From: Paraphysomonas bandaiensis
Lineage: Eukaryota; Protista; Chrysophyceae
NCBI GenBank assembly: GCA_965644295.1
Contig: CBFFRP010000561.1
Span: forward strand, 1-63,231
Direction: 5' to 3'
Length of the DNA stretch: 63,231 nucleotides
The notes under the pieces are model-generated. The model made no database searches, had not been told where the DNA came from, and saw only the letters and a program-made list of their open reading frames with translations. Within the stretch, counting starts at the first letter, position 1, and each line of letters begins with the position of its first letter. Below are positions 2,883-62,249 of the stretch, piece by piece. The position numbers were made by a program, and so were the translations under genes.

Positions 2883-3004
2883 ACCACTCAACAGAAACAC
2901 CTCCCGATATATCGATCTCAGGTTACACCTGAAGTAACAGCATTACTATATATGCTGGTTATGTAGCATATATCCGACTGAGCTGCTACCATCACAGTTA
3001 AATA

Positions 3005-3174
3005 CCTACATACATACATACATACATACATACATACATACATACATACATACATACATACATACATACCTACATACATACATACATACATACATACATA
3101 CATACATACATACATACCTACATACATACATACATACATACATACCTACATACATACATACATACATACATACA

Positions 3175-3208
<34 letters not shown>

Positions 3209-3450
3209 CATACATACATACATACATACATACATACCTACATACATACATACATACATACATACATACATACATACATACATACATACATACATACATA
3301 CATACATACAAACATACATACATACATACATACATACATACATACATACATACATACATACATACATACATACATACATACATACATACATACATACATA
3401 CATACATACATACATACATACATACATACATACATACATACATACATACA

Positions 3451-3484
<34 letters not shown>

Positions 3485-3502
3485 CATACATACATACATA
3501 CA
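3005..3502. repeat. (CATA)n/(TATG)n microsatellite, ~0.5 kb, with a few interruptions
   Basis: Seen directly, between the divergent sulfotransferase and WDR83 start codons. Confidence 0.99.
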
Positions 3503-3558
3503 CACAGTTCTTCATAGTGGGTATTCTGTCGGGGTGATGTTAATCACCGTTTTCTATA

Positions 3559-4836: not shown

Positions 4837-5302
4837 ATAAGGGTTAGGGTTTTTGTATTAATATATAGGTGGAATATGTAGGGTTAAAATTAGGTGCAGA
4901 GTGTTGTACTTTCTCACAAATGAAATAGTTCGAAGTGCATCTTTTGTCTTAAATTTACTCATCCAATTGCTCTAGATTCGTTGTTGCGTTGTCCAATAGG
5001 CGTAAACACCTTTACGTGGGCCATTCTTCGATTCTGTGACGGCTCAGAAACGAAGATCTAATGCAGTTTATCTCTTAAAGTGGCTGTCTGAATAAGCACT
5101 AATTCCCCATGGAAAAAGGGCGTTAAGCTGCACTATTAGAGGATTAGTGACTATTAGATGTTGAACAAGATGGCTAAATTATTACTAATTTGAACCAACA
5201 TAATAAAAATATAGTGACTTGAGAGTCAAATGTTCTTTTGCATCATAATAATAACAACAGAAGTTCATTTTTATACTTTACTCTCTACTAGAATAATACA
5301 GG

Positions 5303-16710: not shown

Positions 16711-18153
16711 CTAAAATATGCAATATTTATCATAATCTACAGCGCTATGTCCCTTTTTATTCCTAATTTCCAAATCAGGACCCCCATCACGAATTATGAT
16801 AGAAATTTCCTTTTTTTTCTCTCGACATGCAATCATTAAGGCCGTGTCAGATTTGAAATTTTGCACATTGAGATCACAATTAGCTCGAACCAGCAATGAA
16901 CATATTTCTTCCTGATCGTTTTCTACTGCATAATGTAGGGCTGTATTGCCAGCATTGTCACGTGCATCTGTATCTGCATCCTCTTTAAGCAGAGCAATGC
17001 AGACATCTTTTAGGCCTTTACGAGTAGCCAGCATAAGAGCCGTTTCACCTTTACTATTTAAAATATCGATTTTTGCCCCAGCAGAAATTAAAAAAGTAGC
17101 AACATCAGAATGTCCAGCTGCTATAGAGTCCACAAGAGGTGTTTCCCCAGAGTGTGTCCGCTCATCCAGATGGCAATTTCTATCTACAAAAAGGGTGCAG
17201 ACACCTTTGTGTCCCTTCCGACTTGCCCAATGCAAGGCATTCTCGCCCTTGTTATTAGCAGCCGTTATATCAGCACCTACATCAATCATTGCCTGACATA
17301 CTTCAACCCATCCAACATCTGCTGCAAAATGTAAAGCCGTGTTCCCTTCCTTGCTCCGAATAGTTCCATTAACTCCATTACTCAACAATAGCATTGCAAT
17401 ATCGGGAGCGTCTTTCATAATGGCATTCATAAGTGCTGTTTCACCTTTCTTGTTTCGCACATTCATATCTGCCTTGCTTTCGATGAGGAGCGAACATACA
17501 TCCAGGAGTCTACAACGACAGGCAAGAATAAGTGCACTGTCCCCCCAGTTATTCACCGCATCAAGAGCGCACTGTTTCTCAATTAATATTGAACTTACGG
17601 CGGATTGACCTTTGATGATCGAATTCATTAGCGCCGTATTTCCATCACTGTTAGTTTGGTCAATTTCGGCTCCGGCTTCAAGCAAACATTTACACACAAC
17701 AACATTTCCGCATCGGCTAGCCAATATTAGTGGGGTGTCTCCTCTTTTGTTCGTAACATTCACCTTGGCTCCTTTAGACACCAATAAGAAACATATGTCC
17801 TCGTGTCCTACAGTTATCGCACAATTCAGTGCCGTCTCACCCTTTCCATTCTGAATATTCATGTCCGCACCTTTTTCAATAAGTTCACAACATAGTTCTA
17901 TGTGACCCTTGCGGGCGCAACAGATAAGTGCCGTATCACCGGAGCGGTTAGCAGTATTAACAGAACATGATGCATTGATAAGGTGCTTCGCGATGGCAAT
18001 GCTGTCATTAACACAAGCAATCAAAAGAGGTGTGTTTCCCTCTTCGTCTGTTTTGTTTAAATGGACAAAGCCTCTTTGAAGAATATTCTGAACTTGCTGC
18101 TCGTCAGCTGCTTGAACGGCACTCATCACATCCCTTCCGATCGAACCTCCCAT
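16711..18153 (-). CDS. Ankyrin repeat protein (~13 repeats), intronless, N-terminal MGG
   Basis: 33-aa G(N/D/E)T(P/A)L periodic repeats throughout the 480-aa ORF. Confidence 0.95.
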   Translation of the reverse strand: MGGSIGRDVMSAVQAADEQQVQNILQRGFVHLNKTDEEGNTPLLIACVNDSIAIAKHLINASCSVNTANRSGDTALICCARKGHIELCCELIEKGADMNIQNGKGETALNCAITVGHEDICFLLVSKGAKVNVTNKRGDTPLILASRCGNVVVCKCLLEAGAEIDQTNSDGNTALMNSIIKGQSAVSSILIEKQCALDAVNNWGDSALILACRCRLLDVCSLLIESKADMNVRNKKGETALMNAIMKDAPDIAMLLLSNGVNGTIRSKEGNTALHFAADVGWVEVCQAMIDVGADITAANNKGENALHWASRKGHKGVCTLFVDRNCHLDERTHSGETPLVDSIAAGHSDVATFLISAGAKIDILNSKGETALMLATRKGLKDVCIALLKEDADTDARDNAGNTALHYAVENDQEEICSLLVRANCDLNVQNFKSDTALMIACREKKKEISIIIRDGGPDLEIRNKKGHSAVDYDKYCIF

Positions 18154-18606
18154 AGCTGTTACTAAACACAGGGCCTTTAGTATGAGGATGTGATCTCACT
18201 TCCACTGTACAGTCAATTCTATCCTGTGTATCGTCCAGATATGGTCTGGCCCATATAGAGCGTGTAGATACAGCAGAGCATATGGATACAGTGCAGACCG
18301 TTACTGTTAAATCTAGTCGGAGTCACTGCATAGTGCAGACAGCTCCACGCCCTCCTCGCTCTACATACATACAGCAGCAGCAGCAGTGCACTATTTCATA
18401 CTGTATATGGATATTAGGAATACAGCAGAAGTACACAGCCTACAGTTCTATACAGCGGAGTAGGAGGAGCACCATATACCGGTATACGTCCAGCGTGCAG
18501 CAGAATGTGTTATGGTCTCATGTACTCGGCACGCGGCAGTGTGTTGTGTTGCAGTGTAAAGGTCACTGATAAGGTCACTGCAGACAAGCACTAACTAGCA
18601 ATACAC

Positions 18607-21600
18607 ATGGCATCCACACTGGGCTTAGGCCTCGATACTCTCCAGAGATCACTGGATAAGGCGCAACACGAAGCAGCCGAAAGTGCCCGTGAGATGATGG
18701 CGCAGACAGGTGAATGCTGCTGCAACCCTACCGTGTATAACTATATATGACCACATGCATATCTATATATGACCACATGCATATCTATATATGACCCTAT
18801 GCATGTCTATATATGACTCTATGCATATCTATATATGACCACATGCATATCTATATATGACCCTATGCATGTCTATATATGACCCTATGCATGTCTATAT
18901 ATGACTCTATGCATGTCTATATATGACCCTATGCATGTCTATATACGACCCTATGCATGTCTATATATGACCCTATGCATATCTATATATGACCCTATGC
19001 ATATCTATATACGACCCTATGCATATCTATATGACCCTATGCATATCTATATATGACCCTATGCATATCTATATATGACCATATGCATATCTATATATGA
19101 CTATGCATATCTATATATGACCATATGCATATCTATATATGACCCTATGCATGTCTATATATGACCCTATGCATATCTATATATGACCCTATGCATATCT
19201 ATATATGACCCTATGCGTATCTATATATGACCCTATGCATATCTATATATGACCCTATGCATATCTATATACGACCCTATGCATATCTATATGACCCTAT
19301 GCATATCTATATATGACCCTATGCATATCTATATACGACCCTATGCATATCTATATGACCCTATGCATATCTATATGACCCTATGCATATCTATATATGA
19401 CCCTATGCATATCTATATATGACCATATGCATATCTATATATGACCCTATGCATGTCTATATATGACCCTATGCATATCTATATATGACCCTATGCATAT
19501 CTATATATGACCCTATGCGTATCTATATATGACCCTATGCATATCTATATATGACCCTATGCATATCTATATACGACCCTATGCATATCTATATGACCCT
19601 ATGCATATCTATATATGACCCTATGCATATCTATATACGACCCTATGCATATCTATATGACCCTATGCATATCTATATGACCCTATGCATATCTATATAT
19701 GACCCTATGCATGTCTATATATGACCCTATGCATGTCTATATATGACCACATGCATATCTATATATGACCCTATGCATATAGATATATGACCCTATGCAT
19801 ATCTATATGACCCTATGCATGTCTATATATGACCCTATTCATATCTATATATGACCCTATTCATATCTATATATGACCCTATGCATATCTATATATGACC
19901 CTATGCATGTCTATATATGACCCTATGCATGTCTATATACGACTCTATGCATATAGATATATGACCCTATGCATGTCTATATATGACCCTATGCATATCT
20001 ATATATGACCCTATGCATGTCTATATATGACCCTATGCATATCTATATATGACCCTATGCATATAGATATACGACCCAATGCATATAGATATATGACCCT
20101 ATGCATATCTATATATGACCCTATGCATGTCTATATGACCCTATGCATGTCTATATATGACCCTATGCATATCTATATATGACCCTATGCATATCTATAT
20201 ATGACCCTATGCATATAGATATATGACCCTATGCATGTCTATATATGACCCTATGCATATCTATATATGACCCTATGCATGTCTATATATGACCCTATGC
20301 ATATCTATATATGACCCTATGCATGTCTATATACGACCCTATGCATATAGATATATGACCCTATGCATATCTATATATGACCCTATGCATGTCTATATAT
20401 GACCCTATGCATATAGATATACGACCCAATGCATATAGATATATGACCATATTTATGTCTATATATGACCCTATGCATATAGATATATGACCCTATGCAT
20501 GTCTATATATGACTCTATGCATATCTATATATGACCCTATGCATGTCTATATACGACCCTATGCATATCTATATATGACCCTATGCATATCTATATATGA
20601 CCCTATGCATATCTATATATGACCCTATTCATATCTATATATGACCATATGCATGTCTATATATGACCCTATGCATATCTATATATGACCCTATGCATAT
20701 CTATATATGACCATATTTATGTCTATATATGACCCTATGCATATCTATATATGACCCTATGCATGTCTATATATGACCCTATGCATGTCTATATATGACT
20801 CTATGCATGTCTATATATGACCCTATGCATATCTATATATGACCCTATGCATGTCTATATATGACCCTATGCATATCTATATATGACCCTATGCATGTCT
20901 ATATATGACCCTATGCATATCTATATATGACCCTATTCATATCTATATATGACCATATGCATGTCTATATATGACCCTATGCATATCTATATATGACCCT
21001 ATACATATCTATATATGACCATATTTATGTCTATATATGACCCTATGCATATCTATATATGACCCTATGCATGTCTATATATGACCCTATGCATGTCTAT
21101 ATATGACCCTATGCATATCTATATATGACCCTATGCGTATCTATATATGACCCTATGCATATCTATATACGACCCTATGCATATCTATATGACCCTATGC
21201 ATATCTATATATGACCCTATGCATATCTATATATGACCCTATGCGTATCTATATATGACCCTATGCATATCTATATACGACCCTATGCATATCTATATGA
21301 CCCTATGCATATCTATATATGACCCTATGCATGTCTATATATGACCATATGCATGTCTATATATGACCCTATGCATATCTATATATGACCCTATACATAT
21401 CTATATATGACCATATTTATGTCTATATATGACCCTATGCATATCTATATATGACCCTATGCATGTCTATATATGACCCTATGCATGTCTATATATGACC
21501 CTATGCATATCTATATATGACCCTATGCGTATCTATATATGACCCTATGCATATCTATATACGACCCTATGCATATCTATATGACCCTATGCATATCTAT

Positions 21601-24600
21601 ATATGACCCTATGCATGTCTATATATGACCCTATGCATGTCTATATATGACCCTATGCATATCTATATATGACCCTATGCATGTCTATATATGACCCTAT
21701 GCATATCTATATATGACCCTATGCATGTCTATATACGACCCTATGCATATCTATATATGACCCTATGCATATCTATATATGACCCTATGCATGTCTATAT
21801 ATGACCCTATGCATATAGATATACGACCCAATGCATATAGATATATGACCATATTTATGTCTATATATGACCCTATGCATGTCTATATATGACCCTATGC
21901 ATATCTATATATGACCCTATGCGTATCTATATATGACCCTATGCATATCTATATACGACCCTATGCATATCTATATGACCCTATGCATATCTATATATGA
22001 CCCTATGCATGTCTATATATGACCCTATGCATATCTATATATGACTCTATGCATATCTATATATGACCCTATGCATGTCTATATATGACCCTATGCATGT
22101 CTATATATGACTATGCATATCTATATATGACCCTATGCATATAGATATATGACCCTATTCATATCTATATATGACCATATTTATGTCTATATATGACCCT
22201 ATGCATGTCTATATATGACCCTATGCATATCTATATATGACCCTATGCGTATCTATATATGACCCTATGCATATCTATATACGACCCTATGCATATCTAT
22301 ATGACCCTATGCATATCTATATATGACCCTATGCATGTCTATATATGACCCTATGCATATCTATATATGACTCTATGCATATCTATATATGACCCTATGC
22401 ATATCTATATATGACCCTATGCATGTCTATATATGACCCTATGCATATAGATATACGACCCAATGCATATAGATATATGACCATATTTATGTCTATATAT
22501 GACCCTATGCATGTCTATATATGACCCTATGCATATCTATATATGACCCTATGCGTATCTATATATGACCCTATGCATATCTATATACGACCCTATGCAT
22601 ATCTATATGACCCTATGCATATCTATATATGACCCTATGCATGTCTATATATGACCCTATGCATATCTATATATGACTCTATGCATATCTATATATGACC
22701 CTATGCATGTCTATATATGACCCTATGCATGTCTATATATGACTCTATGCATATCTATATATGACCCTATGCATATAGATATATGACCCTATTCATATCT
22801 ATATATGACTCTATGCATGTCTATATATGACCCTATGCATATCTATATACGACCCTATGCATATCTATATGACCCTATGCATATCTATATATGACCCTAT
22901 GCATGTCTATATATGACCCTATGCATATCTATATATGACTCTATGCATATCTATATATGACCCTATGCATATCTATATATGACCCTATGCATGTCTATAT
23001 ATGACCCTATGCATATAGATATACGACCCAATGCATATAGATATATGACCATATTTATGTCTATATATGACCCTATGCATGTCTATATATGACCCTATGC
23101 ATATCTATATATGACCCTATGCGTATCTATATATGACCCTATGCATATCTATATACGACCCTATGCATATCTATATGACCCTATGCATATCTATATATGA
23201 CCCTATGCATGTCTATATATGACCCTATGCATATCTATATATGACTCTATGCATATCTATATATGACCCTATGCATGTCTATATATGACCCTATGCATGT
23301 CTATATATGACTCTATGCATATCTATATATGACCCTATGCATATAGATATATGACCCTATTCATATCTATATATGACTCTATGCATGTCTATATATGACC
23401 CTATGCATATCTATATACGACCCAATGCATATAGATATATGACCATATTTATGTCTATATATGACCCTATGCATATAGATATATGACCCTATGCATGTCT
23501 ATATATGACCCTATGCATATCTATATATGATTATGCATATCTATATATGACTCTATGCATATCTATATATGACCCTATGCATGTCTGTATATGACCCTAT
23601 GCATGTCTATATATGACCCTATGCATATCTATATACGACCCTATGCATATCTATATATGACCATATTTATGTCTATATATGACCCTATGCATATCTATAT
23701 ATGACCCTATGCATGTCTATATATGACCCTATGCATATAGATATATGACCCTATGCATGTCTATATATGACCCTATGCATATCTATATATGACCCTATGC
23801 ATGTCTATATATGACCCTATGCATATCTATATATGACCCTATGCATGTCTATATACGACCCTATGCATATAGATATATGACCCTATGCATATCTATATAT
23901 GACCCTATGCATGTCTATATATGACCCTATGCATATAGATATACGACCCAATGCATATAGATATATGACCATATTTATGTCTATATATGACCCTATGCAT
24001 ATAGATATATGACCCTATGCATGTCTATATATGACTCTATGCATATCTATATATGACCCTATGCATATCTATATATGACCCTATTCATATCTATATATGA
24101 CTCTATGCATATCTATATATGACCCTATGCATATCTATATATGACCCTATTCATATCTATATATGACCCTATGCATGTCTATATATGACCCTATGCATAT
24201 CTATATATGACCCTATGCATATCTATATATGACCATATTTATGTCTATATATGACCCTATGCATATCTATATATGACCCTATGCATGTCTATATATGACC
24301 CTATGCATGTCTATATATGACCCTATGCATGTCTATATATGACCCTATGCATATCTATATATGACCCTATGCATATAGATATATGACCCTATGCATGTCT
24401 ATATATGACCCTATGCATATCTATATATGACCCTATGCATGTCTATATATGACCCTATGCATATCTATATATGACCCTATGCATGTCTATATACGACCCT
24501 ATGCATATAGATATATGACCCTATGCATATCTATATATGACCCTATGCATATCTATATATGACCCTATGCATATAGATATATGACCCTATGCATGTCTAT

Positions 24601-27600
24601 ATATGACCCTATGCATATCTATATATGACCCTATGCATGTCTATATATGACCCTATGCATATCTATATATGACCCTATGCATGTCTATATACGACCCTAT
24701 GCATATAGATATATGACCCTATGCATATCTATATATGACCCTATGCATATCTATATATGACCCTATGCATATCTATATATGACCATATTTATGTCTATAT
24801 ATGACCCTATGCATATCTATATATGACCCTATGCATGTCTATATATGACCCTATGCATGTCTATATATGACCCTATGCATGTCTATATATGACCCTATGC
24901 ATATCTATATATGACCCTATGCATATAGATATATGACCCTATGCATGTCTATATATGACCCTATGCATATCTATATATGACCCTATGCATGTCTATATAT
25001 GACCCTATGCATATCTATATATGACCCTATGCATGTCTATATACGACCCTATGCATATAGATATATGACCCTATGCATATCTATATATGACCCTATGCAT
25101 GTCTATATATGACCCTATGCATATAGATATACGACCCAATGCATATAGATATATGACCATATTTATGTCTATATATGACCCTATGCATATAGATATATGA
25201 CCCTATGCATGTCTATATATGACTCTATGCATATCTATATATGACCCTATGCATATCTATATATGACCCTATTCATATCTATATATGACTCTATGCATGT
25301 CTATATATGACCCTATGCATATCTATATACGACCCAATGCATATAGATATATGACCATATTTATGTCTATATATGACCCTATGCATATAGATATATGACC
25401 CTATGCATGTCTATATATGACCCTATGCATATCTATATATGATTATGCATATCTATATATGACTCTATGCATATCTATATATGACCCTATGCATGTCTGT
25501 ATATGACCCTATGCATGTCTATATATGACCCTATGCATATCTATATACGACCCTATGCATATCTATATATGACCATATTTATGTCTATATATGACCCTAT
25601 GCATATCTATATATGACCCTATGCATGTCTATATATGACCCTATGCATATAGATATATGACCCTATGCATGTCTATATATGACCCTATGCATATCTATAT
25701 ATGACCCTATGCATGTCTATATATGACCCTATGCATATCTATATATGACCCTATGCATGTCTATATACGACCCTATGCATATAGATATATGACCCTATGC
25801 ATATCTATATATGACCCTATGCATGTCTATATATGACCCTATGCATATAGATATACGACCCAATGCATATAGATATATGACCATATTTATGTCTATATAT
25901 GACCCTATGCATATAGATATATGACCCTATGCATGTCTATATATGACTCTATGCATATCTATATATGACCCTATGCATATCTATATATGACCCTATTCAT
26001 ATCTATATATGACTCTATGCATATCTATATATGACCCTATGCATATCTATATATGACCCTATTCATATCTATATATGACCCTATGCATGTCTATATATGA
26101 CCCTATGCATATCTATATATGACCCTATGCATATCTATATATGACCCTATGCATATCTATATATGACCCTATGCATATCTATATATGACCATAATGTCTA
26201 TATATGACCCTATGCATATCTATATATGACCCTATGCATGTCTATATATGACCCTATGCATGTCTATATATGACCCTATGCATGTCTATATATGACCCTA
26301 TGCATATCTATATATGACCCTATGCATATCTATATATGACCCTATGCGTATCTATATATGACCCTATGCATATCTATATACGACCCTATGCATATCTATA
26401 TGACCCTATGCATATCTATATATGACCCTATGCATGTCTATATATGACCCTATGCATGTCTATATATGACCCTATGCATGTCTATATATGACCCTATGCA
26501 TATCTATATATGACCCTATGCATATCTATATATGACCCTATGCGTATCTATATATGACCCTATGCATATCTATATACGACCCTATGCATATCTATATATG
26601 ACCATATTTATGTCTATATATGACCCTATGCATGTCTATATATGACCCTATGCATGTCTATATATGACCCTATGCATATAGATATATGACCCTATGCATA
26701 TCTATATATGACCCTATGCATATCTATATATGACCCTATGCATGTCTATATATGACCCTATGCATATCTATATATGACCCTATGCATGTCTATATACGAC
26801 CCTATGCATATAGATATATGACCCTATGCATATCTATATATGACCCTATGCATGTCTATATATGACCCTATGCATATAGATATACGACCCAATGCATATA
26901 GATATATGACCATATTTATGTCTATATATGACCCTATGCATATAGATATATGACCCTATGCATGTCTATATATGACTCTATGCATATCTATATATGACCC
27001 TATGCATATCTATATATGACCCTATTCATATCTATATATGACTCTATGCATATCTATATATGACCCTATGCATATCTATATATGACCCTATTCATATCTA
27101 TATATGACTCTATGCATATCTATATATGACCCTATGCATATCTATATATGACCCTATTCATATCTATATATGACCCTATGCATGTCTATATATGACCCTA
27201 TGCATATCTATATATGACCCTATGCATATCTATATATGACCATATTTATGTCTATATATGACCCTATGCATATCTATATATGACCCTATGCATATCTATA
27301 TATGACCATATTTATGTCTATATATGACCCTATGCATATCTATATATGACCCTATGCATGTCTATATATGACCCTATGCATGTCTATATATGACCCTATG
27401 CATGTCTATATATGACCCTATGCATATCTATATATGACCCTATGCATATCTATATATGACCCTATGCGTATCTATATATGACCCTATGCATATCTATATA
27501 CGACCCTATGCATATCTATATGACCCTATGCATATCTATATATGACCCTATGCATGTCTATATATGACCCTATGCATGTCTATATATGACCCTATGCATG

Positions 27601-30600
27601 TCTATATATGACCCTATGCATATCTATATATGACCCTATGCATATCTATATATGACCCTATGCGTATCTATATATGACCCTATGCATATCTATATACGAC
27701 CCTATGCATATCTATATGACCCTATGCATATCTATATATGACCCTATGCATGTCTATATATGACCCTATGCATGTCTATATATGACCCTATGCATATCTA
27801 TATATGATTATGCATATCTATATATGACCATATGCATATCTATATATGACTCTATGCATATCTATATATGACCCTATGCATGTCTGTATATGACCCTATG
27901 CATGTCTATATATGACCCTATGCATATCTATATACGACCCTATGCATATCTATATATGACCCTATGCATGTCTATATATGACCCTATGCATATCTATATA
28001 TGATTATGCATATCTATATATGACTCTATGCATATCTATATATGACCCTATGCATGTCTGTATATGACCCTATGCATGTCTATATATGACCCTATGCATA
28101 TCTATATATGACCCTATGCATGTCTATATATGACCCTATGCATATCTATATATGACCCTATGCATGTCTATATATGACTCTATGCATATCTATATATGAC
28201 CCTATGCATATCTATATATGACCCTATTCATATCTATATATGACTCTATGCATATCTATATATGACCCTATGCATATCTATATATGACCCTATTCATATC
28301 TATATATGACCATATGCATGTCTATATATGACCCTATGCATATCTATATATGACCCTATGCATATCTATATATGACCATATTTATGTCTATATATGACCC
28401 TATGCATATCTATATATGACCCTATGCATGTCTATATATGACCCTATGCATGTCTATATATGACCCTATGCATGTCTATATATGACCCTATGCATATCTA
28501 TATATGACCCTATGCATATCTATATATGACCCTATGCGTATCTATATATGACCCTATGCATATCTATATACGACCCTATGCATATCTATATGACCCTATG
28601 CATATCTATATACGACCCTATGCATGTCTATATATGACCCTATGCATGTCTATATATGACCCTATGCATATCTATATATGATTATGCATATCTATATATG
28701 ACCATATGCATATCTATATATGACCCTATGCATATCTATATATGACCCTATGCATGTCTGTATATGACCCTATGCATGTCTATATATGACCCTATGCATA
28801 TCTATATACGACCCTATGCATATCTATATATGACCCTATGCATGTCTATATATGACCCTATGCATGTCTATATATGACCCTATGCATATCTATATATGAC
28901 CATATGCATATCTATATATGACCCTATGCATATCTATATATGACCCTATGCATATCTATATATGACCCTATGCATATCTATATACGACCCTATGCATATC
29001 TATATATGACCCTATGCATATCTATATATGACCCTATTCATATCTATATACGACCATATTTATGTCTATATATGACCCTATGCATATCTATATATGACTA
29101 TGCATATAGATATACGACCCTATGCATATCTATATATGACCCTATGCATGTCTATATTCTTGTGTGTGACCCTCTATATGACTATGCATATAGATATACG
29201 ACCCTATGCATATCTATATATGACCCTATGCATATCTATATATGACCCTATGCATAACTATTTATGACCCTATGCATATCTATATATGACCCTATGCATG
29301 TCTATATATGACCCTATGCATATCTATATGACCCTATGCACAATATTTCACATTTTATCTCTCTGTTACTATACCTACCATCGCAGTATAGCTATAGGCA
29401 CTTCTATAATACTTAATCAATATCGTTATGGCGATCTCTTCATCTGTAGCTTATACTATGATTATTTGAGCACAATCGATGTAACCTGACTCTACCTCAG
29501 CGATCAACCAAAACCAGGCGGCAATCATATCATCCCTTGAGAGCACTGTATCTCAACTGAGAGGCGAGAAGGCGGAGTTTTTTGACCAAATACGACAGTT
29601 GAAGGGCGAGATAAGCGAAAGCTCTGACCGCATCCTCTCTTTTGAGAGTCAGCTGACCACTGGGCATGACCGTCTCAGAACATTGGAGGCGGCGCTATCT
29701 TCGAAAACTGAGGAGTGTTCGGTACTGCAGAAAGAAAATGCCTCGCTGAAAGCTGTGAACGCGAAACTGCTAATGGAGCTGAAGGGAGAGCGGAATCGCG
29801 CTGTATCAGGTACAGAAGCATCGGTTGATATGGCCGAGTCGTCCTCTGGAAATAAGAGTACACACAAGAAAAAATCGAAAACTTCTAGCTCGCATGGGGA
29901 TGTTGAAGCGGATAAGACTGCTCGTCTAGAAATTGTTGCACTGAGAGTTGAGAAAGAATCACTTGTAAGTCAAGTACGCACGCTTCAATCACAACTGGAA
30001 TCCATGAAAGAATCAGTACAGGAGGTATTGCAGTTATACGCAGAGTGTCTTTGTGTGTGCTTCCTGCAGTGTAAAAATTGTGATATCATAGTATTATCGC
30101 ATCAATAGCTTTGTTGAAGCCTTGTACTCTTGCAGGAAGGAAACTTAAGGGTGCGATTGGAAAAGGGGGCTGCCGATATCGATGAGTTAAAACAGCAACG
30201 TATTATTTCTGAGGATCACCTCTTTGTAAGCGCCCAGCGTATTGAGGAGTTGAATAAAGAGGTATATTGTTTCATTGACAAATATACGCCACCTTATAAA
30301 GGGATAGAGCGATCGCTAAATGTATATTCGTATAGTGGCTGTTCATATGTGGACGAACGCTTGTTTCAAAAGTGTAATAAGATTATATCTTTAATGCTAC
30401 GTACTGCAAATACAAATCAATACAATACATTTAGGTTTAACGTATTTTTCAGCTTCAGCAGGCTCATCGACTTCGCGAGGTGGAGAAAGAGAATTTCATG
30501 GCTACAATAAGCAATTTGTGTACGAAGTACGAAAATGCAATGGCGGATCATGGAACGGAAAGGAGTAATTTAATCGCTATTAATTCTGCTCTATCGGAGC

Positions 30601-32448
30601 GAATCGAAGCAGGACGAATAGATCAGGAAAATCAATCTGCCAGGATGAAGGAAAAAATCCAGTCATTGGAGATTGAATGTAGTCGATTGGAGAAAAAGCT
30701 CGCATTCCATGAAGCGGAAACGACCGAACTACGAGTAGAATTAAAAGAGTTACAGAGAGAACGTGGAGACAGAGGGAAATCTGTCAATATTCAGATAACC
30801 AAATTGCAGGAGTCTCTTCATAAAGCACAGGAAGCATTGCTGGTTGAGAAGTCGACTGTACGGTCACAGGTACGAGAACTATATAGTTTTTAGTGTTCTT
30901 AGAGTTGATGTGCTCAGGAAACTGACTTATCAAAGCTGGAAATCGAAAAACAGCAACTGGAAGAAGAGCTTGCAGTAGCAAACAGATTAAGACAAAAGGC
31001 GGAACTGCGGGTAGACGCTGAGGTGAGTTCAATGAGTAATTTCACTGTGTCTAACTAATTTCACACTTTACGACTAGATTCAGAGAGCTCAGCTATCAGA
31101 GAAAGCTCGTAAGGAGACGGCACTTGAAGTTCAACAGCTCCAAACCGACCTTGAAACTAAAGAGGGCCAAATCGATAGTCTGTATGTCGTTTTCGTTCTG
31201 TTGAACTTGTATATTAATGTTGTTGTAGATTAAGTGACTTGAATAAGAAGTATGCAGAATGCAGTTGCGAGATTTTGAAGGTAATGTACATTGGCTCAGT
31301 GTGGTATTTGAAATTACAAAGCACAGGCTGAGAATTATGAACAGCGACAGAAAATACTCGAGCTAGAAAGTAAATGTACTGCATTAAAGGAAAGTGTGAT
31401 AGAGGCTGAGGACAAGCTTGCACAGCATGCACACGAAACAGAGGTTTTAGTCAGTATATTTCGAACTGATTTTTACCTGAATGTTTCGATTATTAGGACG
31501 ACAAGAATGTCCATAATTCATTAGTAGAAGCAGAAGCAACTATAGCACGTCTTCGAAATGAGTTGGATGTTTCAAATGACGAGCTATTGGCTCTGTCAGA
31601 GGCGTTTGAATTAAGAGGTAGGGGTTACTATGTCATGGAAGTCAAATGTAGAGAATGAGTCAGCTACCTCTAGGCCAACTTATTCAGAATATGGAGAAAA
31701 GATCGGATGTAGTGTTCTCAGATATATCTTTCCTAAAGATGGATAATGCACGAAAGGCAGAGAAAATTCTTGATTTGGAGAAATCTATGACAAAACTAAC
31801 AGAAGATATTGGAGGCACAAGCCAGAAGCTACAGGAGACGAATGACATCGTCCGTTTGAAGGATGGAGAAGTATACAACACATTTATTTCTCGTATATTT
31901 ATTTTGATTACTAAGCAATACTTGATAGATCGAGGAATTGAAATCTCAGATAGATTCCTGCGGGAAAAAAATTGAAGAAATGGAGCGAAATATCTCAAAG
32001 TATCTCATAGAAATTGAGGAGTTAAGTGCCGCAGTTAAGGAATTCGAGGTCTGTCGTCACACAATTCATAGATTTTTGTGAAGAATTGAGTCACAGGAGC
32101 TAAAGTCACGCTATGCAACCCTGAACTTAGAACACCAAGATACGCTGATGACAATGGAGGAGCTTTCTCAAACAGCTGCGGAAGAAATTGAACGTAGAGA
32201 AAAGGATATTTCTGATCTTGCGAGGAAGAATGAAGAGAGTATGAACCTGGCGGTGGATTATGAGGTTGATATGTCCCGTTCATCGTGTTATAGACTAAAT
32301 TGAAAGTGTTTTTCAGAAACTCTCGATTGCCTATGAAACTTTGGTGCATCAGTATTCGGAGTTGATGGATGAAAGATCCCAGTTATTCGTAGCTTATACA
32401 GAGGCCAAACATGAAATCAATTTGTTTAAAGCGCAAATGGCAGAATGA
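18607..32448 (+). CDS. Long coiled-coil protein, multi-exon; exon 1 = 18607-18709, intron 1 = 18710-29500, remaining exons 29501-32448
   Basis: Exon 1 MASTLGLGLDTLQRSLDKAQHEAAESAREMMAQT (103 nt, phase 1, CAG|GTGAAT) joins in frame to acceptor CTGACTCTACCTCAG|29501 (AINQNQAAIISSLESTVSQLRGEK...), continuing into ORF 29599. Many further short GT-AG introns; stop TGA at 32446-32448. Confidence 0.75.
18741..29340. repeat. 22-bp satellite array (GACCCTATGCATATCTATATAT), ~10.6 kb, roughly 480 units, with recurrent variants
   Basis: Seen directly. Variants include CATGTC, CATATAGAT, TACGACC, CCAATG, CATATTTATG, GCGTATC and 20-bp deletion units. Confidence 0.99.
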
Positions 32449-34310: not shown

Positions 34311-37244
34311 TTAACCTCTTCGGGGTCGCTTCTTCTGCTGCTCCTCAACTCTGGTTGACACACTTCTCTTAACCCCGGTAATAGTTTTCTCATGACGACT
34401 GAAAAGTTTCGTTGACAATGCCTTCGTGAAAATATCAGCCGCCATATCATCCGTCGACACATGAATCAACTTTGCCGTAGGAAATTTTCCATTTACATGC
34501 TCTCTCACCCAGTGATACTTGATGTCTATATGCTTCGACCTCTTATGATACACAGGATTCTCGGAGAGATCTTTCGCACTCTTGCTATCCATAAAGAATG
34601 GAGTCGGCTTCGCAACTAAGAGCCCGAGCTCCTTGAACACCCCCCGAAGCCACACCAGTTCTTGCATAGCCGCATACTCCGCCATATATTCAGATTCCAT
34701 GCTCGAAGTTGCAACTGTTGTCTGTAGTTTAGACTGCCAGGCCAATGCGCCTGCACATAAGAACACAATGTATCCTGTTGTCGATCGCCGAGTCAGTCTA
34801 TCACCAGCCCAATCTGAATCACTGAACACATGTAAGTCGAACTCACTCCCACTGAATCTGATGCCCTCATCAATTGTTCCACGCAAATATTTCAATAAGT
34901 GAATCGCCAGTTTGCACGATGCATATGTCGGACAACTACTAAATCGAGACAATAACCCCACTGCATAAGCCAGATCAGGTCTAGTATGCATTGCTAGATA
35001 CAACACTGCTCCAATAATTTGCCGATACGGAAATGAGTCAACCCACTGCTTCTGCTCCTCCGTAAGTTCACGTTCCTCTGCCAACAGATCCTGAACATTA
35101 GTAGGTAGTGGGGCCTCCTTATTCTTACTACTCTTTCCCATAACTGAGCTGAATTTCTTGATAATATTCTTAGCATACTCAGATTGATCTAACATATACC
35201 AATTTTCTCCTCTGGTTATCCTGATGTTCAGAAATCGCTTACACACTCCCAGATCATGCATCTCGAATGTTTCACAGAACCTACGCTTTACGCTTTCCAA
35301 GTAAGTCAGATCAGCGGATGCAATTATGATATCATCAACATATATCAATAATAAATGCAGTTTTCCGTTACTCCATCGCATATACAAACACGTATCCAAA
35401 ATACACGGAGTAAAATGCAATGATTTAATAAACTTGTCAATATGTTTATTCCACTGTCGCGGTGAAGATCGCAGTCCATACAATGCCTTGATTAGTTGAA
35501 AACACCATCCAGCTAGTAATTCCTCATCTGGTGGAGGTGCCATATACACGTCATCCTCCAGATCTGCATAGCAAAATGCGGATGATACATCTAATTGATG
35601 CACATGCATCTGTAACATAAACGCAATCGCTAACACTAGTCTAATGGTTATACCCTTAACCACTGGAGCGAAAGTGGACGGCTCCTCCTCCTTCTTCTCT
35701 TGGAGATTTCCTAATGCCACTAGCCGAGCCTTGTACTTTACTATATTCCCTAGTATGTCTCGCTTCACCGTATGCACATATTTCGCTCTAACTAATTTCA
35801 CTCCGCTTGGAATTTTCACGATCTTCAAGACACGTCTTTTCAGCAATGATGTCTTCTCCACCATTCGAGCTTTTCTCCATTGTTGATACTGTGGAGATCT
35901 CTCTGCCTCGGCATATGAATTTGGTATCTTGATATCTTCTGTCTCTGCATGGTTAAGATCAATATTATGCGCATCCGGTACTTCAACCATATTAATCTCT
36001 CCTAAAACTGACGCGTTTGCCAGTCTCCGCTGCAGCCGTTTGCGTCGGACCCGACCATCACCATCTAGTTCAATCGGTCGACGAGGTATATAAGAACCCG
36101 TACCTTGCTCATCCTGAGCACGCACATCGTGCGTTGTGGGAGGAGCCCCGCTCACAACCCCAGACTCATAGTCTTCAGAGGTCTGCAACCTCACAGCTGT
36201 CTCCTGACAGGTTGGGTCAGGACTCTCCTGTAACCCTCCAGGTCTTCCCTGGTCCAGCACCCTGGCTGGCATAGTACTCAGGGCGTCCCCCTTTCCTATA
36301 TATCCGGTATTCCCGGGAGTTTCTGCAGTCATTCGCACTACGTCCTCGACGTGAATCGGCACCCGGTGCTCGATATGCTTCCGACCTGCAGTTACCAGAG
36401 ATCGATAGGCTACTATTACCCCCTTTCGTTCTACTACTCTCGTGGTCTTGTAGAGAAGACCATCCTCATCATCAATATGATATGTACCTTCTAAGCCCGC
36501 ATAGTCAGACACAATTTTCGGTCTCTCGGCCTCCTTCACTCGAAGAGCATCTATCTCAGCGAAATAGCTCTCCGAGCGTGACGGTATGGACTCATCAGTT
36601 AATACATGTACCGACGTGACGACCCTATCAGTCGCAGGTAGATATACATCATATCCTACCTTTTCATCTGAATATCCTATCAGATATCCGATAAGGGCCT
36701 TGTCGTCCCAGTCTTTCCGTCGATCCGCCTTTGTAGTGAGGACATACGCACGACACCCCCATACTCTGAGATATTTCAGGTTGGGAGCCTCACCAGTCAA
36801 AAATTCAAGAGGGGACATATACCCCTTCGCTGTCTTTGTAGGCAATCGAATTAATATGTACCTGGCTGCCATGTAGGCATCTAGCCAAAACTGTGAAGGC
36901 AATCCTGACTGAATCAGCATCGCTAATGTCATCTCACCACAGGTCCTGAATTTCCGCTCCTCAATCGCGTTCATCTCAGGAGAGTCCGTAGAGCTCCACG
37001 TATGTTGATAGCAACCCTGTGACCTAAGATATTGTCGCAGCTCATCACATATTAGCTCCCCTGCTCCATCTGCATGGTAATGATGCATTTCTAATTTGTA
37101 CCTTTTCACATCTCCTTCAAAAATCTTCTTGAAAACCTGCAGTACCGATGACCCAGTCCTATGAACAAGCCCTTCCGACCAGAACATCCGACTGGCATGG
37201 TGTGTTAGTTTGAGCACATATATTTCCCTCCTCGAGCTGGACAA
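34311..37244 (-). CDS. Copia pol (integrase core, RT, RNase H)
   Basis: HADGAGEL and PEMNAIEERKFRT (IN), LRVWGCRAYV, YKARLVALG, QLDVSSAF, KALYGLRSSPRQW, LIYVDDII (RT), FSDSDWAGD, KRSKHIDIKYHWVRE, ADIFTKAL (RH). Confidence 0.95.
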   Translation of the reverse strand: MSSSRREIYVLKLTHHASRMFWSEGLVHRTGSSVLQVFKKIFEGDVKRYKLEMHHYHADGAGELICDELRQYLRSQGCYQHTWSSTDSPEMNAIEERKFRTCGEMTLAMLIQSGLPSQFWLDAYMAARYILIRLPTKTAKGYMSPLEFLTGEAPNLKYLRVWGCRAYVLTTKADRRKDWDDKALIGYLIGYSDEKVGYDVYLPATDRVVTSVHVLTDESIPSRSESYFAEIDALRVKEAERPKIVSDYAGLEGTYHIDDEDGLLYKTTRVVERKGVIVAYRSLVTAGRKHIEHRVPIHVEDVVRMTAETPGNTGYIGKGDALSTMPARVLDQGRPGGLQESPDPTCQETAVRLQTSEDYESGVVSGAPPTTHDVRAQDEQGTGSYIPRRPIELDGDGRVRRKRLQRRLANASVLGEINMVEVPDAHNIDLNHAETEDIKIPNSYAEAERSPQYQQWRKARMVEKTSLLKRRVLKIVKIPSGVKLVRAKYVHTVKRDILGNIVKYKARLVALGNLQEKKEEEPSTFAPVVKGITIRLVLAIAFMLQMHVHQLDVSSAFCYADLEDDVYMAPPPDEELLAGWCFQLIKALYGLRSSPRQWNKHIDKFIKSLHFTPCILDTCLYMRWSNGKLHLLLIYVDDIIIASADLTYLESVKRRFCETFEMHDLGVCKRFLNIRITRGENWYMLDQSEYAKNIIKKFSSVMGKSSKNKEAPLPTNVQDLLAEERELTEEQKQWVDSFPYRQIIGAVLYLAMHTRPDLAYAVGLLSRFSSCPTYASCKLAIHLLKYLRGTIDEGIRFSGSEFDLHVFSDSDWAGDRLTRRSTTGYIVFLCAGALAWQSKLQTTVATSSMESEYMAEYAAMQELVWLRGVFKELGLLVAKPTPFFMDSKSAKDLSENPVYHKRSKHIDIKYHWVREHVNGKFPTAKLIHVSTDDMAADIFTKALSTKLFSRHEKTITGVKRSVSTRVEEQQKKRPRRG

Positions 37245-59100: not shown

Positions 59101-59547
59101 ACATACATACATACATACATACATACATACATACATACATACATACATACATACATACATACATACATACATACATACATACATACATACATACATACAT
59201 ACATACATACATACATACATACATACATACATACATACATACATACATACATACATACATACATACATACATACATACATACATACATACATACATACAT
59301 ACATACATACATACATACATACATACATACATACATACATACATACATACATACATACATACATACATACATACATACATACATACATACATACATACAT
59401 ACATACATACATACATACATACATACATACATACATACATACATACATACATACATACATACATACATACATACATACATACATACATACATACATACAT
59501 ACATACATACATACATACATACATACATACATACATACATACATACA
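59101..59547. repeat. Perfect (CATA)n tract, ~447 bp
   Basis: Seen directly. Confidence 0.99.
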
Positions 59548-59614
59548 TGCATAATAATCACTCTGATATAGAATACCTTATAAGTACCACATCTGCATAC
59601 TGAAAACTCGATAA

Positions 59615-60867: not shown

Positions 60868-62249
60868 ACATACATACATACATACATACATACATACATA
60901 CATACATACATACATACATACATACATACATACATACATACATACATACATACATACATACATACATACATACATACATACATACATACATACATACATA
61001 CATACATACATACATACATACATACATACATACATACATACATACATACATACATACATACATACATACATACATACATACATACATACATACATACATA
61101 CATACATACATACATACATACATACATACATACATACATACATACATACATACATACATACATACATACATACATACATACATACATACATACATACATA
61201 CATACATACATACATACATACATACATACATACATACATACATACATACATACATACATACATACATACATACATACATACATACATACATACATACATA
61301 CATACATACATACATACATACATACATACATACATACATACATACATACATACATACATACATACATACATACATACATACATACATACATACATACATA
61401 CATACATACATACATACATACATACATACATACATACATACATACATACATACATACATACATACATACATACATACATACATACATACATACATACATA
61501 CATACATACATACATACATACATACATACATACATACATACATACATACATACATACATACATACATACATACATACATACATACATACATACATACATA
61601 CATACATACATACATACATACATACATACATACATACATACATACATACATACATACATACATACATACATACATACATACATACATACATACATACATA
61701 CATACATACATACATACATACATACATACATACATACATACATACATACATACATACATACATACATACATACATACATACATACATACATACATACATA
61801 CATACATACATACATACATACATACATACATACATACATACATACATACATACATACATACATACATACATACATACATACATACATACATACATACATA
61901 CATACATACATACATACATACATACATACATACATACATACATACATACATACATACATACATACATACATACATACATACATACATACATACATACATA
62001 CATACATACATACATACATACATACATACATACATACATACATACATACATACATACATACATACATACATACATACATACATACATACATACATACATA
62101 CATACATACATACATACATACATACATACATACATACATACATACATACATACATACATACATACATACATACATACATACATACATACATACATACATA
62201 CATACATACATACATACATACATACATACATACATACATACATACATAC
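60868..62249. repeat. Perfect (CATA)n tract, ~1.38 kb
   Basis: Seen directly. Confidence 0.99.

Follow-up and report, generated by a model that had tools for sequence, protein, structure and literature searches.

The window analysed here is a 63,231-nt stretch of the genome of the chrysophyte Paraphysomonas bandaiensis (contig CBFFRP010000561.1 of assembly GCA_965644295.1, positions 1 to 63,231, read on the forward strand). It contains a gene of 13 exons whose first intron is almost completely filled by a single tandem repeat. The gene encodes a long coiled coil of 761 codons, with a coding sequence (CDS) of 2,286 nt that comprises these codons and the stop codon at 32446-32448 (Table 1). From the first to the twelfth, its introns measure 10,791, 111, 191, 48, 55, 47, 46, 53, 56, 58, 48 and 52 nt. 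The first is about 200 times as long as the median of the other 11 (53 nt, range 46-191 nt) and 56 times as long as the next largest. The original prediction, made from the sequence alone, had proposed a first intron of ~10.8 kb filled by a repeat array, with most other introns about 100-fold shorter. Both statements hold for this gene: the array accounts for 98.3% of intron 1, and the unique remainder amounts to 187 nt (27 + 160). The assembly holds one copy each of exon 1 with its 5′ flank, of the 160-nt 3′ flank of the intron and of the whole gene.

The exon junction across this intron is documented by an RNA sequence. When exon 2 alone was used as the query against a representative library of 1.84 billion proteins, the best match was a protein of 539 aa (P0001, E = 1e-87) that aligned from its residue 36. 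Residues 1-35 of P0001 correspond to exon 1 and the split codon (MASTLGLGLDTLQRSLDKAQHEAAESAREMMAQT-A-INQNQ...), and the open reading frame (ORF) runs MASTLGLG...MMAQTAINQNQ, which is the contiguity (MASTLGLG...AQT-AINQNQ) that the original prediction called for. The protein derives from a JGI contig of 2,453 nt (Ga0186469_102981, sample 3300017004; hereafter L010), which aligns to the window in 13 colinear blocks; 11 GT-AG introns have been spliced out of it and one is still present. Bases 1-136 of L010 match 18574-18709 at 100%, and the next base resumes at 29501. Ten junctions of L010 have a single GT-AG solution; the junction of exons 11 and 12 was placed by eye, the contig differing from the window there. 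Because 11 of the 12 genomic introns are missing from it, L010 is RNA-derived, and the junction 18709^29501, the RNA evidence by which the prediction was to be judged, was therefore used in vivo. A chimeric transcript assembly was considered and rejected, as the overlap of the flanks is limited to 3 nt (CAG) and the join falls exactly at GT/AG and in frame. The retained intron of L010 is the 53-nt intron 8 (31444-31496; L010 ~1574-1626). It splits the ORF into pieces of 539 and 223 aa, and for this reason the ORF of P0001 ends early.

The donor CAG/GTGAAT at 18709/18710 and the acceptor CTCAG/CGA form the sole GT-AG solution for the first junction, and they join exons 1 and 2 in phase 1 and in frame. 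Upstream of the acceptor, CTGAC at 29486-29490 followed by TCTACCTCAG resembles a branch point with a pyrimidine-rich stretch. The donor, the CTGAC motif and the CTCAG acceptor ending at 29500 are those named beforehand, and L010 confirms to the base the proposed ATG-initiated exon of 103 nt spliced in phase 1 into the coiled-coil frame. The ATG at 18607 is the true start, since the 33-nt 5′ untranslated region (UTR), which reads VTADKH-stop-LAIH, carries an in-frame TAA ahead of this first ATG. The frame of exon 2 is closed upstream by a TAA at 29482, and its first in-frame ATG lies at 29773. The prediction had stated that this downstream ORF has no ATG before 29599; the frame is indeed free of ATG there, but 29599 is a TTG and not a start codon. 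Starts downstream of the array were rejected, as the three ATGs in 29341-29500 meet stops within 2-14 codons and the exon-2 frame has no ATG before 29773.

Table 1. Features of the coiled-coil gene, its first intron and its neighbours in the window
Feature	Position	Strand	Remarks
5′ UTR, as far as the transcript contig extends	18574-18606	+	L010 bases 1-33 match at 100%
Coding exon 1 (103 nt; 34 codons + 1 nt; MASTLG...MMAQT; donor CAG/GTGAAT)	18607-18709	+	Identical in L010
Intron 1 (10,791 nt; GT-AG; phase 1)	18710-29500	+	Missing from L010; unique GT-AG solution
Intron 1, non-repeat 5′ end (27 nt)	18710-18736	+	
Intron 1, 22-bp minisatellite (~483 units; 10,604 bp)	18737-29340	+	Locus-specific, with higher-order duplicated blocks
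Intron 1, non-repeat 3′ end (160 nt; acceptor CTCAG/)	29341-29500	+	Unique in genome
Exon 2 (524 nt)	29501-30024	+	
Exon 3	30136-30261	+	
Exon 4	30453-30869	+	
Exon 5	30918-31022	+	
Exon 6	31078-31181	+	
Exon 7	31229-31280	+	
Exon 8	31327-31443	+	Next 53-nt intron (31444-31496) retained in L010
Exon 9	31497-31617	+	
Exon 10	31674-31870	+	
Exon 11 (3′ boundary GAG/GTCTGT)	31929-32048	+	
Exon 12 (preceded by CACAG/)	32097-32264	+	
Exon 13 (TGA stop 32446-32448)	32317-32448	+	Transcript contig extends to 32538
Ankyrin-repeat ORF (480 aa; intron-less)	16711-18153	-	Divergent from the coiled-coil gene
ORF with RVT_2 reverse transcriptase and retroviral SH3-like integrase domains (977 aa)	34311-37244	-	

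Tandem Repeats Finder reported one array at 18737-29340, with a period of 22, 485 copies, 90% matches and the consensus ATATCTATATATGACCCTATGC. Our own segmentation gave 483 units, 451 of which are exactly 22 nt long. The commonest units begin with ATATCT (n = 146) and ATGTCT (n = 128) and are accompanied by a dozen recurrent minor variants; with the units coded as letters, at least 14 kinds of recurrent variant unit can be told apart. A block of 39 units (856 bp) has an exact second copy 87 units further on, and the array also holds an exact tandem duplication of 26 units. Head-to-tail 22-bp units and duplicated blocks are both features of a minisatellite or variable number tandem repeat (VNTR), and exact higher-order blocks of this kind, unlike random assembly noise, point to unequal exchange in a real minisatellite. 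There are no N bases in the window, and at both edges of the array degenerate units merge gradually into the unique flanks. A pattern of the repeat dimer allowing up to two mismatches matched the 62.6-Mb assembly 305 times, and the repeat is specific to this locus, since all 305 matches fall inside the window. The array has a G + C content of 33%, against ~40% in its surroundings, and its plus strand is strongly skewed to C over G.

GT and AG are both missing from the consensus unit, and the sense strand of the array is poor in G, with 184 GT and 48 AG dinucleotides compared with 537 GT and 898 AG on the antisense strand. Potential decoy sites are present in the form of ~156 donor-like (C/T)ATGTCTAT and 48 acceptor-like ATATAG motifs. 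All 48 sense-strand AG dinucleotides come from a single type of variant, found in 48 units (~10%; variants D, L and N) from window position 19781 onwards, in which ATATAGATAT stands in place of ATATCTATAT. Since ATAT reads the same on both strands, this double change is equivalent to a micro-inversion of the central CT; the units look like the outcome of a template-switch or hairpin mutation that was later spread by block duplication. Exact matches to TATAWAWR number 369 on the sense strand of the array and 0 on the antisense strand, a density of 35 per kb, whereas the remainder of the window has ~0.4 per kb. A sample of 601 nt of repeat RNA folded at -153.7 kcal/mol, against -126.0 kcal/mol for dinucleotide shuffles (z = -4.9), with a diffuse ensemble. 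A search of 18000-30200 against Rfam returned no family at or above the gathering score. An array of small nucleolar or other non-coding RNAs was rejected, given the absence of an Rfam family and a 22-bp unit shorter than any small nucleolar RNA. An introner or transposon origin was rejected as well, since neither the intron flanks nor the repeat recur elsewhere in the assembly.

Two weak matches, P0004 and P0006, are encoded on contigs of metagenomic DNA (L018 and L019). Exon-by-exon tblastn identified L019 as a colinear orthologue, with colinear matches to exons 2, 3, 5, 6, 9 and 13. For the last exon, identity to the L019 orthologue is 61%, and exon 2 shows 34-35% identity to the orthologous exons in L019 and L018. 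An ATG-initiated exon of 91 nt (4872-4962) with the donor G/GTTGCA was modelled in L019, followed by an intron of 63 nt ending in TTACTGCAG at 5025. This modelled intron is in phase 1, and its split codon aligns exactly with the split codon of intron 1 in the window gene. Judging from L019, the model suggests that intron 1 is old and normally short. The step to an old intron uses position and phase only, because the exon-1 peptides of the window gene and L019 are not significantly similar.

The second ORF of L010, from the C-terminal part of the host protein, scored 27.3 bits (E = 4e-6) against TMF_TATA_bd (PF12325), below the gathering cut-off of 29.1, so the protein is possibly a TMF-like golgin, which we treat as a lead. 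The occurrence of a TATA-motif-rich array in a gene whose Pfam lead is named 'TATA element modulatory factor' is a coincidence and implies no functional link. A protein-atlas look-up of the host gene gave generic coiled-coil neighbours only. Upstream lies the divergent ankyrin-repeat ORF, whose start codon is 453 bp from that of the coiled-coil gene, leaving a gap of 420 bp to 18574; this arrangement suggests that the two genes share a bidirectional promoter region. An exact look-up of the ankyrin protein found no record. Two kb downstream of the coiled-coil gene, the ORF at 34311-37244 belongs to a Ty1/copia-type retrotransposon. The window also carries several large simple repeats beyond the intronic array, in the form of pure, long tetranucleotide microsatellites at 3002-3506, 59101-59553 and 60868-62249, namely (ATAC)126, (ACAT)113 and a 1.4-kb (ACAT)345 at 100% identity.

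Taken together, these data make it probable that intron 1 is an old, ordinary, short spliceosomal intron that a locus-specific VNTR inflated in place and that normal splicing removes. Its starting size would have been ~190 nt, expanded to 10,791 nt by the 22-bp minisatellite found only here; the 187 nt left without the array match the sizes of the other introns (46-191 nt), as would be expected of a repeat expansion inside a normal intron. The array would have grown in place, through slippage and unequal exchange within the pre-existing short intron. Transcription starts at or upstream of 18574, from a promoter within the 420-bp gap common to the divergent ankyrin gene, and the polymerase would traverse all 10.6 kb of repeat. 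An ordinary spliceosome would then pair the distant donor at 18710 with the acceptor at 29500, and the array-bearing allele itself would be spliced. The array would be neutral or mildly harmful baggage and no functional element. The G-poor and AG-poor sense strand and the self-pairing of the repeat RNA may, speculatively, aid the pairing of the distant sites; since both are by-products of the unit sequence, they are held as possibilities only.

Several observations weigh against this interpretation. In L019, the exon-1 peptide of the model has no significant similarity to that of the window gene by BLASTP (27% identity in a forced alignment), and an in-frame ATG lies within the proposed intron. 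In L018, the bases upstream of the methionine equivalent to exon 2 (L018:1-219) contain no ATG, and no exon 1 was seen in them. Exon 1 of L018 is either more distant or absent, and the L018 orthologue may begin at exon 2, without the first intron. A short intron in relatives, one of the points put up for checking, thus appears in the model of L019 (63 nt, phase 1) and finds no counterpart in the 219 nt of L018. On the RNA side, the junction is carried by the single contig L010, whose 2.45 kb depart from the window sequence at ~12 sites (~0.5%). These comprise 8 single-nucleotide polymorphisms (SNPs), at 29921 (C in the assembly, T in L010), 29978 (G in the assembly, A in L010), 30498, 30851, 31169, 31577, 31774 and 32453, and 4 short differences of several bases each, one of them a 9-nt in-frame indel in exon 2 (29810-29819; SGTEAS vs SES, the assembly carrying the 9 extra bases). 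Because of these differences, L010 comes from another allele or another strain, in which the array may be shorter than in the window. L010 thus proves the junction for the species and stops short of proving the splicing of a pre-mRNA with 483 repeats.

Further transcripts of the gene were not found in the protein collections. A word-index protein search with exon 2 gave no matches within the length band, and the same search with P0001 returned P0001 only. A three-sequence alignment of exon 2, used as a query, recovered the two relatives already known and nothing further. Two scans of metagenome contigs, for the repeat dimer and for the last part of exon 1, were blank; since the second missed L010, which is identical over that stretch and is evidently not in the collection, both are uninformative.

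The alternative that survives best holds that the gene is real and that the array-bearing allele or strain is silenced, weakened or mis-spliced, the observed mRNA having come from another allele or strain, in which intron 1 is short. With those ~12 differences from the window, L010 is not a transcript of exactly this sequence; the array itself supplies the donor-like and acceptor-like sites counted above; and in human ABCA7 longer alleles of an intronic VNTR go with lower expression and altered splicing (PMC5954066). Yet in the assembled copy none of the 13 exons is interrupted by a stop and no splice site is damaged, which speaks against a long-dead allele. In addition, the 445 nt of exon sequence adjoining intron 1 are identical in L010 and the window, and the assembly contains no second allele of the gene. 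We judge this alternative unlikely. Of the three inferences in the original prediction, transcription and splicing of the gene through the array is the best supported, with the proviso that the sequence differences of L010 leave it short of strict proof for the window allele.

More improbable still is a pair of bolder readings, in which either a spliceosome tuned to ~50-nt introns routinely and accurately removes a 10.8-kb intron, with its ~180 GT and ~50 AG decoys, because the self-pairing repeat RNA, poor in G and AG, collapses and draws the true sites together, or the array with its 369 TATA motifs serves the gene as an expression timer, as a TBP sink or as an internal promoter. The broader notion that the array is a functional intronic element, be it a TATA-motif sink or internal promoter, a transcription-delay timer, or a centromere or replication origin, appears very improbable. 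It could draw on the strand-specific density of TATAWAWR, on the AT-rich composition and on the folding of the repeat RNA beyond shuffled controls; all these features, however, arise automatically from the repetition of one 22-bp unit, and the array occupies one locus, has no sequence relatives elsewhere in the genome and matches no Rfam family. For the nested chromosomal element that had been suggested earlier, nothing was found in favour. Long arrays of short units are difficult to assemble, but an assembly artefact, whether a mis-join or a wrongly expanded repeat, is just as remote, given both flanks on one RNA in the correct order and strand and hence neighbours in the genome, an N-free array with non-randomly patterned variants and exact duplicated blocks, edges that pass gradually into unique flanks, and no other genomic site from which the repeat could have been borrowed. 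The mis-join that was to refute the prediction is excluded, because a single RNA links both flanks in order on one strand; the exact repeat number probably has to be read as an assembly figure.

Intron 1 has the GT and AG ends, the precise in-frame RNA junction (in RNA from another allele or strain of the species) and the branch-point-like motif of a spliceosomal GT-AG intron. Its closest analogue is the VNTR in intron 18 of human ABCA7, a C-rich 25-bp motif starting at the donor, with alleles of 298-10,678 bp (~427 units) (De Roeck et al. 2018, PMC5954066). This VNTR is documented to vary in length and to affect expression and splicing (PMC5954066). The two arrays share units of ~22-25 bp, a C-rich sense strand and a position a few bases from the donor of an ordinary intron, and both reach ~10.6-10.7 kb (~430-480 units) and are transcribed with the pre-mRNA. 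They differ in their setting: ABCA7 lies in a genome with normal kilobase introns, where the longest allele is an ~8-fold enlargement, whereas in Paraphysomonas the neighbouring introns are ~50 nt long and the enlargement is ~58-fold. The Drosophila Y fertility genes kl-3 and kl-5 contain introns that extend over megabases, consist of simple satellites and need an expression programme dedicated to them in spermatocytes (Fingerhut et al. 2019, PMC6508621); they are similar in that the intron is nearly all tandem repeat, is at least ~100 times the typical size and must be transcribed and spliced. Their introns, in contrast, are heterochromatic, of megabase size and built from 5-7-bp satellites common to other loci, whereas the intron described here is 10.8 kb long, lies in a gene-dense region and has a locus-unique 22-bp unit. 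It shares the mainly-satellite composition of the gigantic Y introns and, at 10.8 kb, stays well below their size of hundreds of kb to Mb. Because the scale differs 100-fold, we take the Drosophila Y introns as a looser analogue and do not assign intron 1 to their class. The novelty lies in the context, namely a protist gene with introns of ~50 nt at its other positions; no new principle is involved.

For the annotation of the gene, the result is a correction, as without the distant 103-nt exon its first 90 codons have no start codon. The differences between the genome and L010 are ready markers for tests of allele- or strain-specific expression. Should the reading based on RNA collapse or TATA-mediated regulation be true, the locus would be a natural single-locus system for the study of long-intron splicing or repeat-mediated regulation. 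If the array-bearing allele proves to be efficiently spliced, the locus would offer a natural test case outside animals for the effects of intronic repeat expansion on transcription and splicing, with one gene, one repeat and allelic markers. A lineage with short introns at least tolerates a first intron ~200 times the usual length and made up nearly entirely of one tandem repeat; if the array allele is spliced efficiently, the spliceosomes of such lineages would not be strictly bound by intron length.

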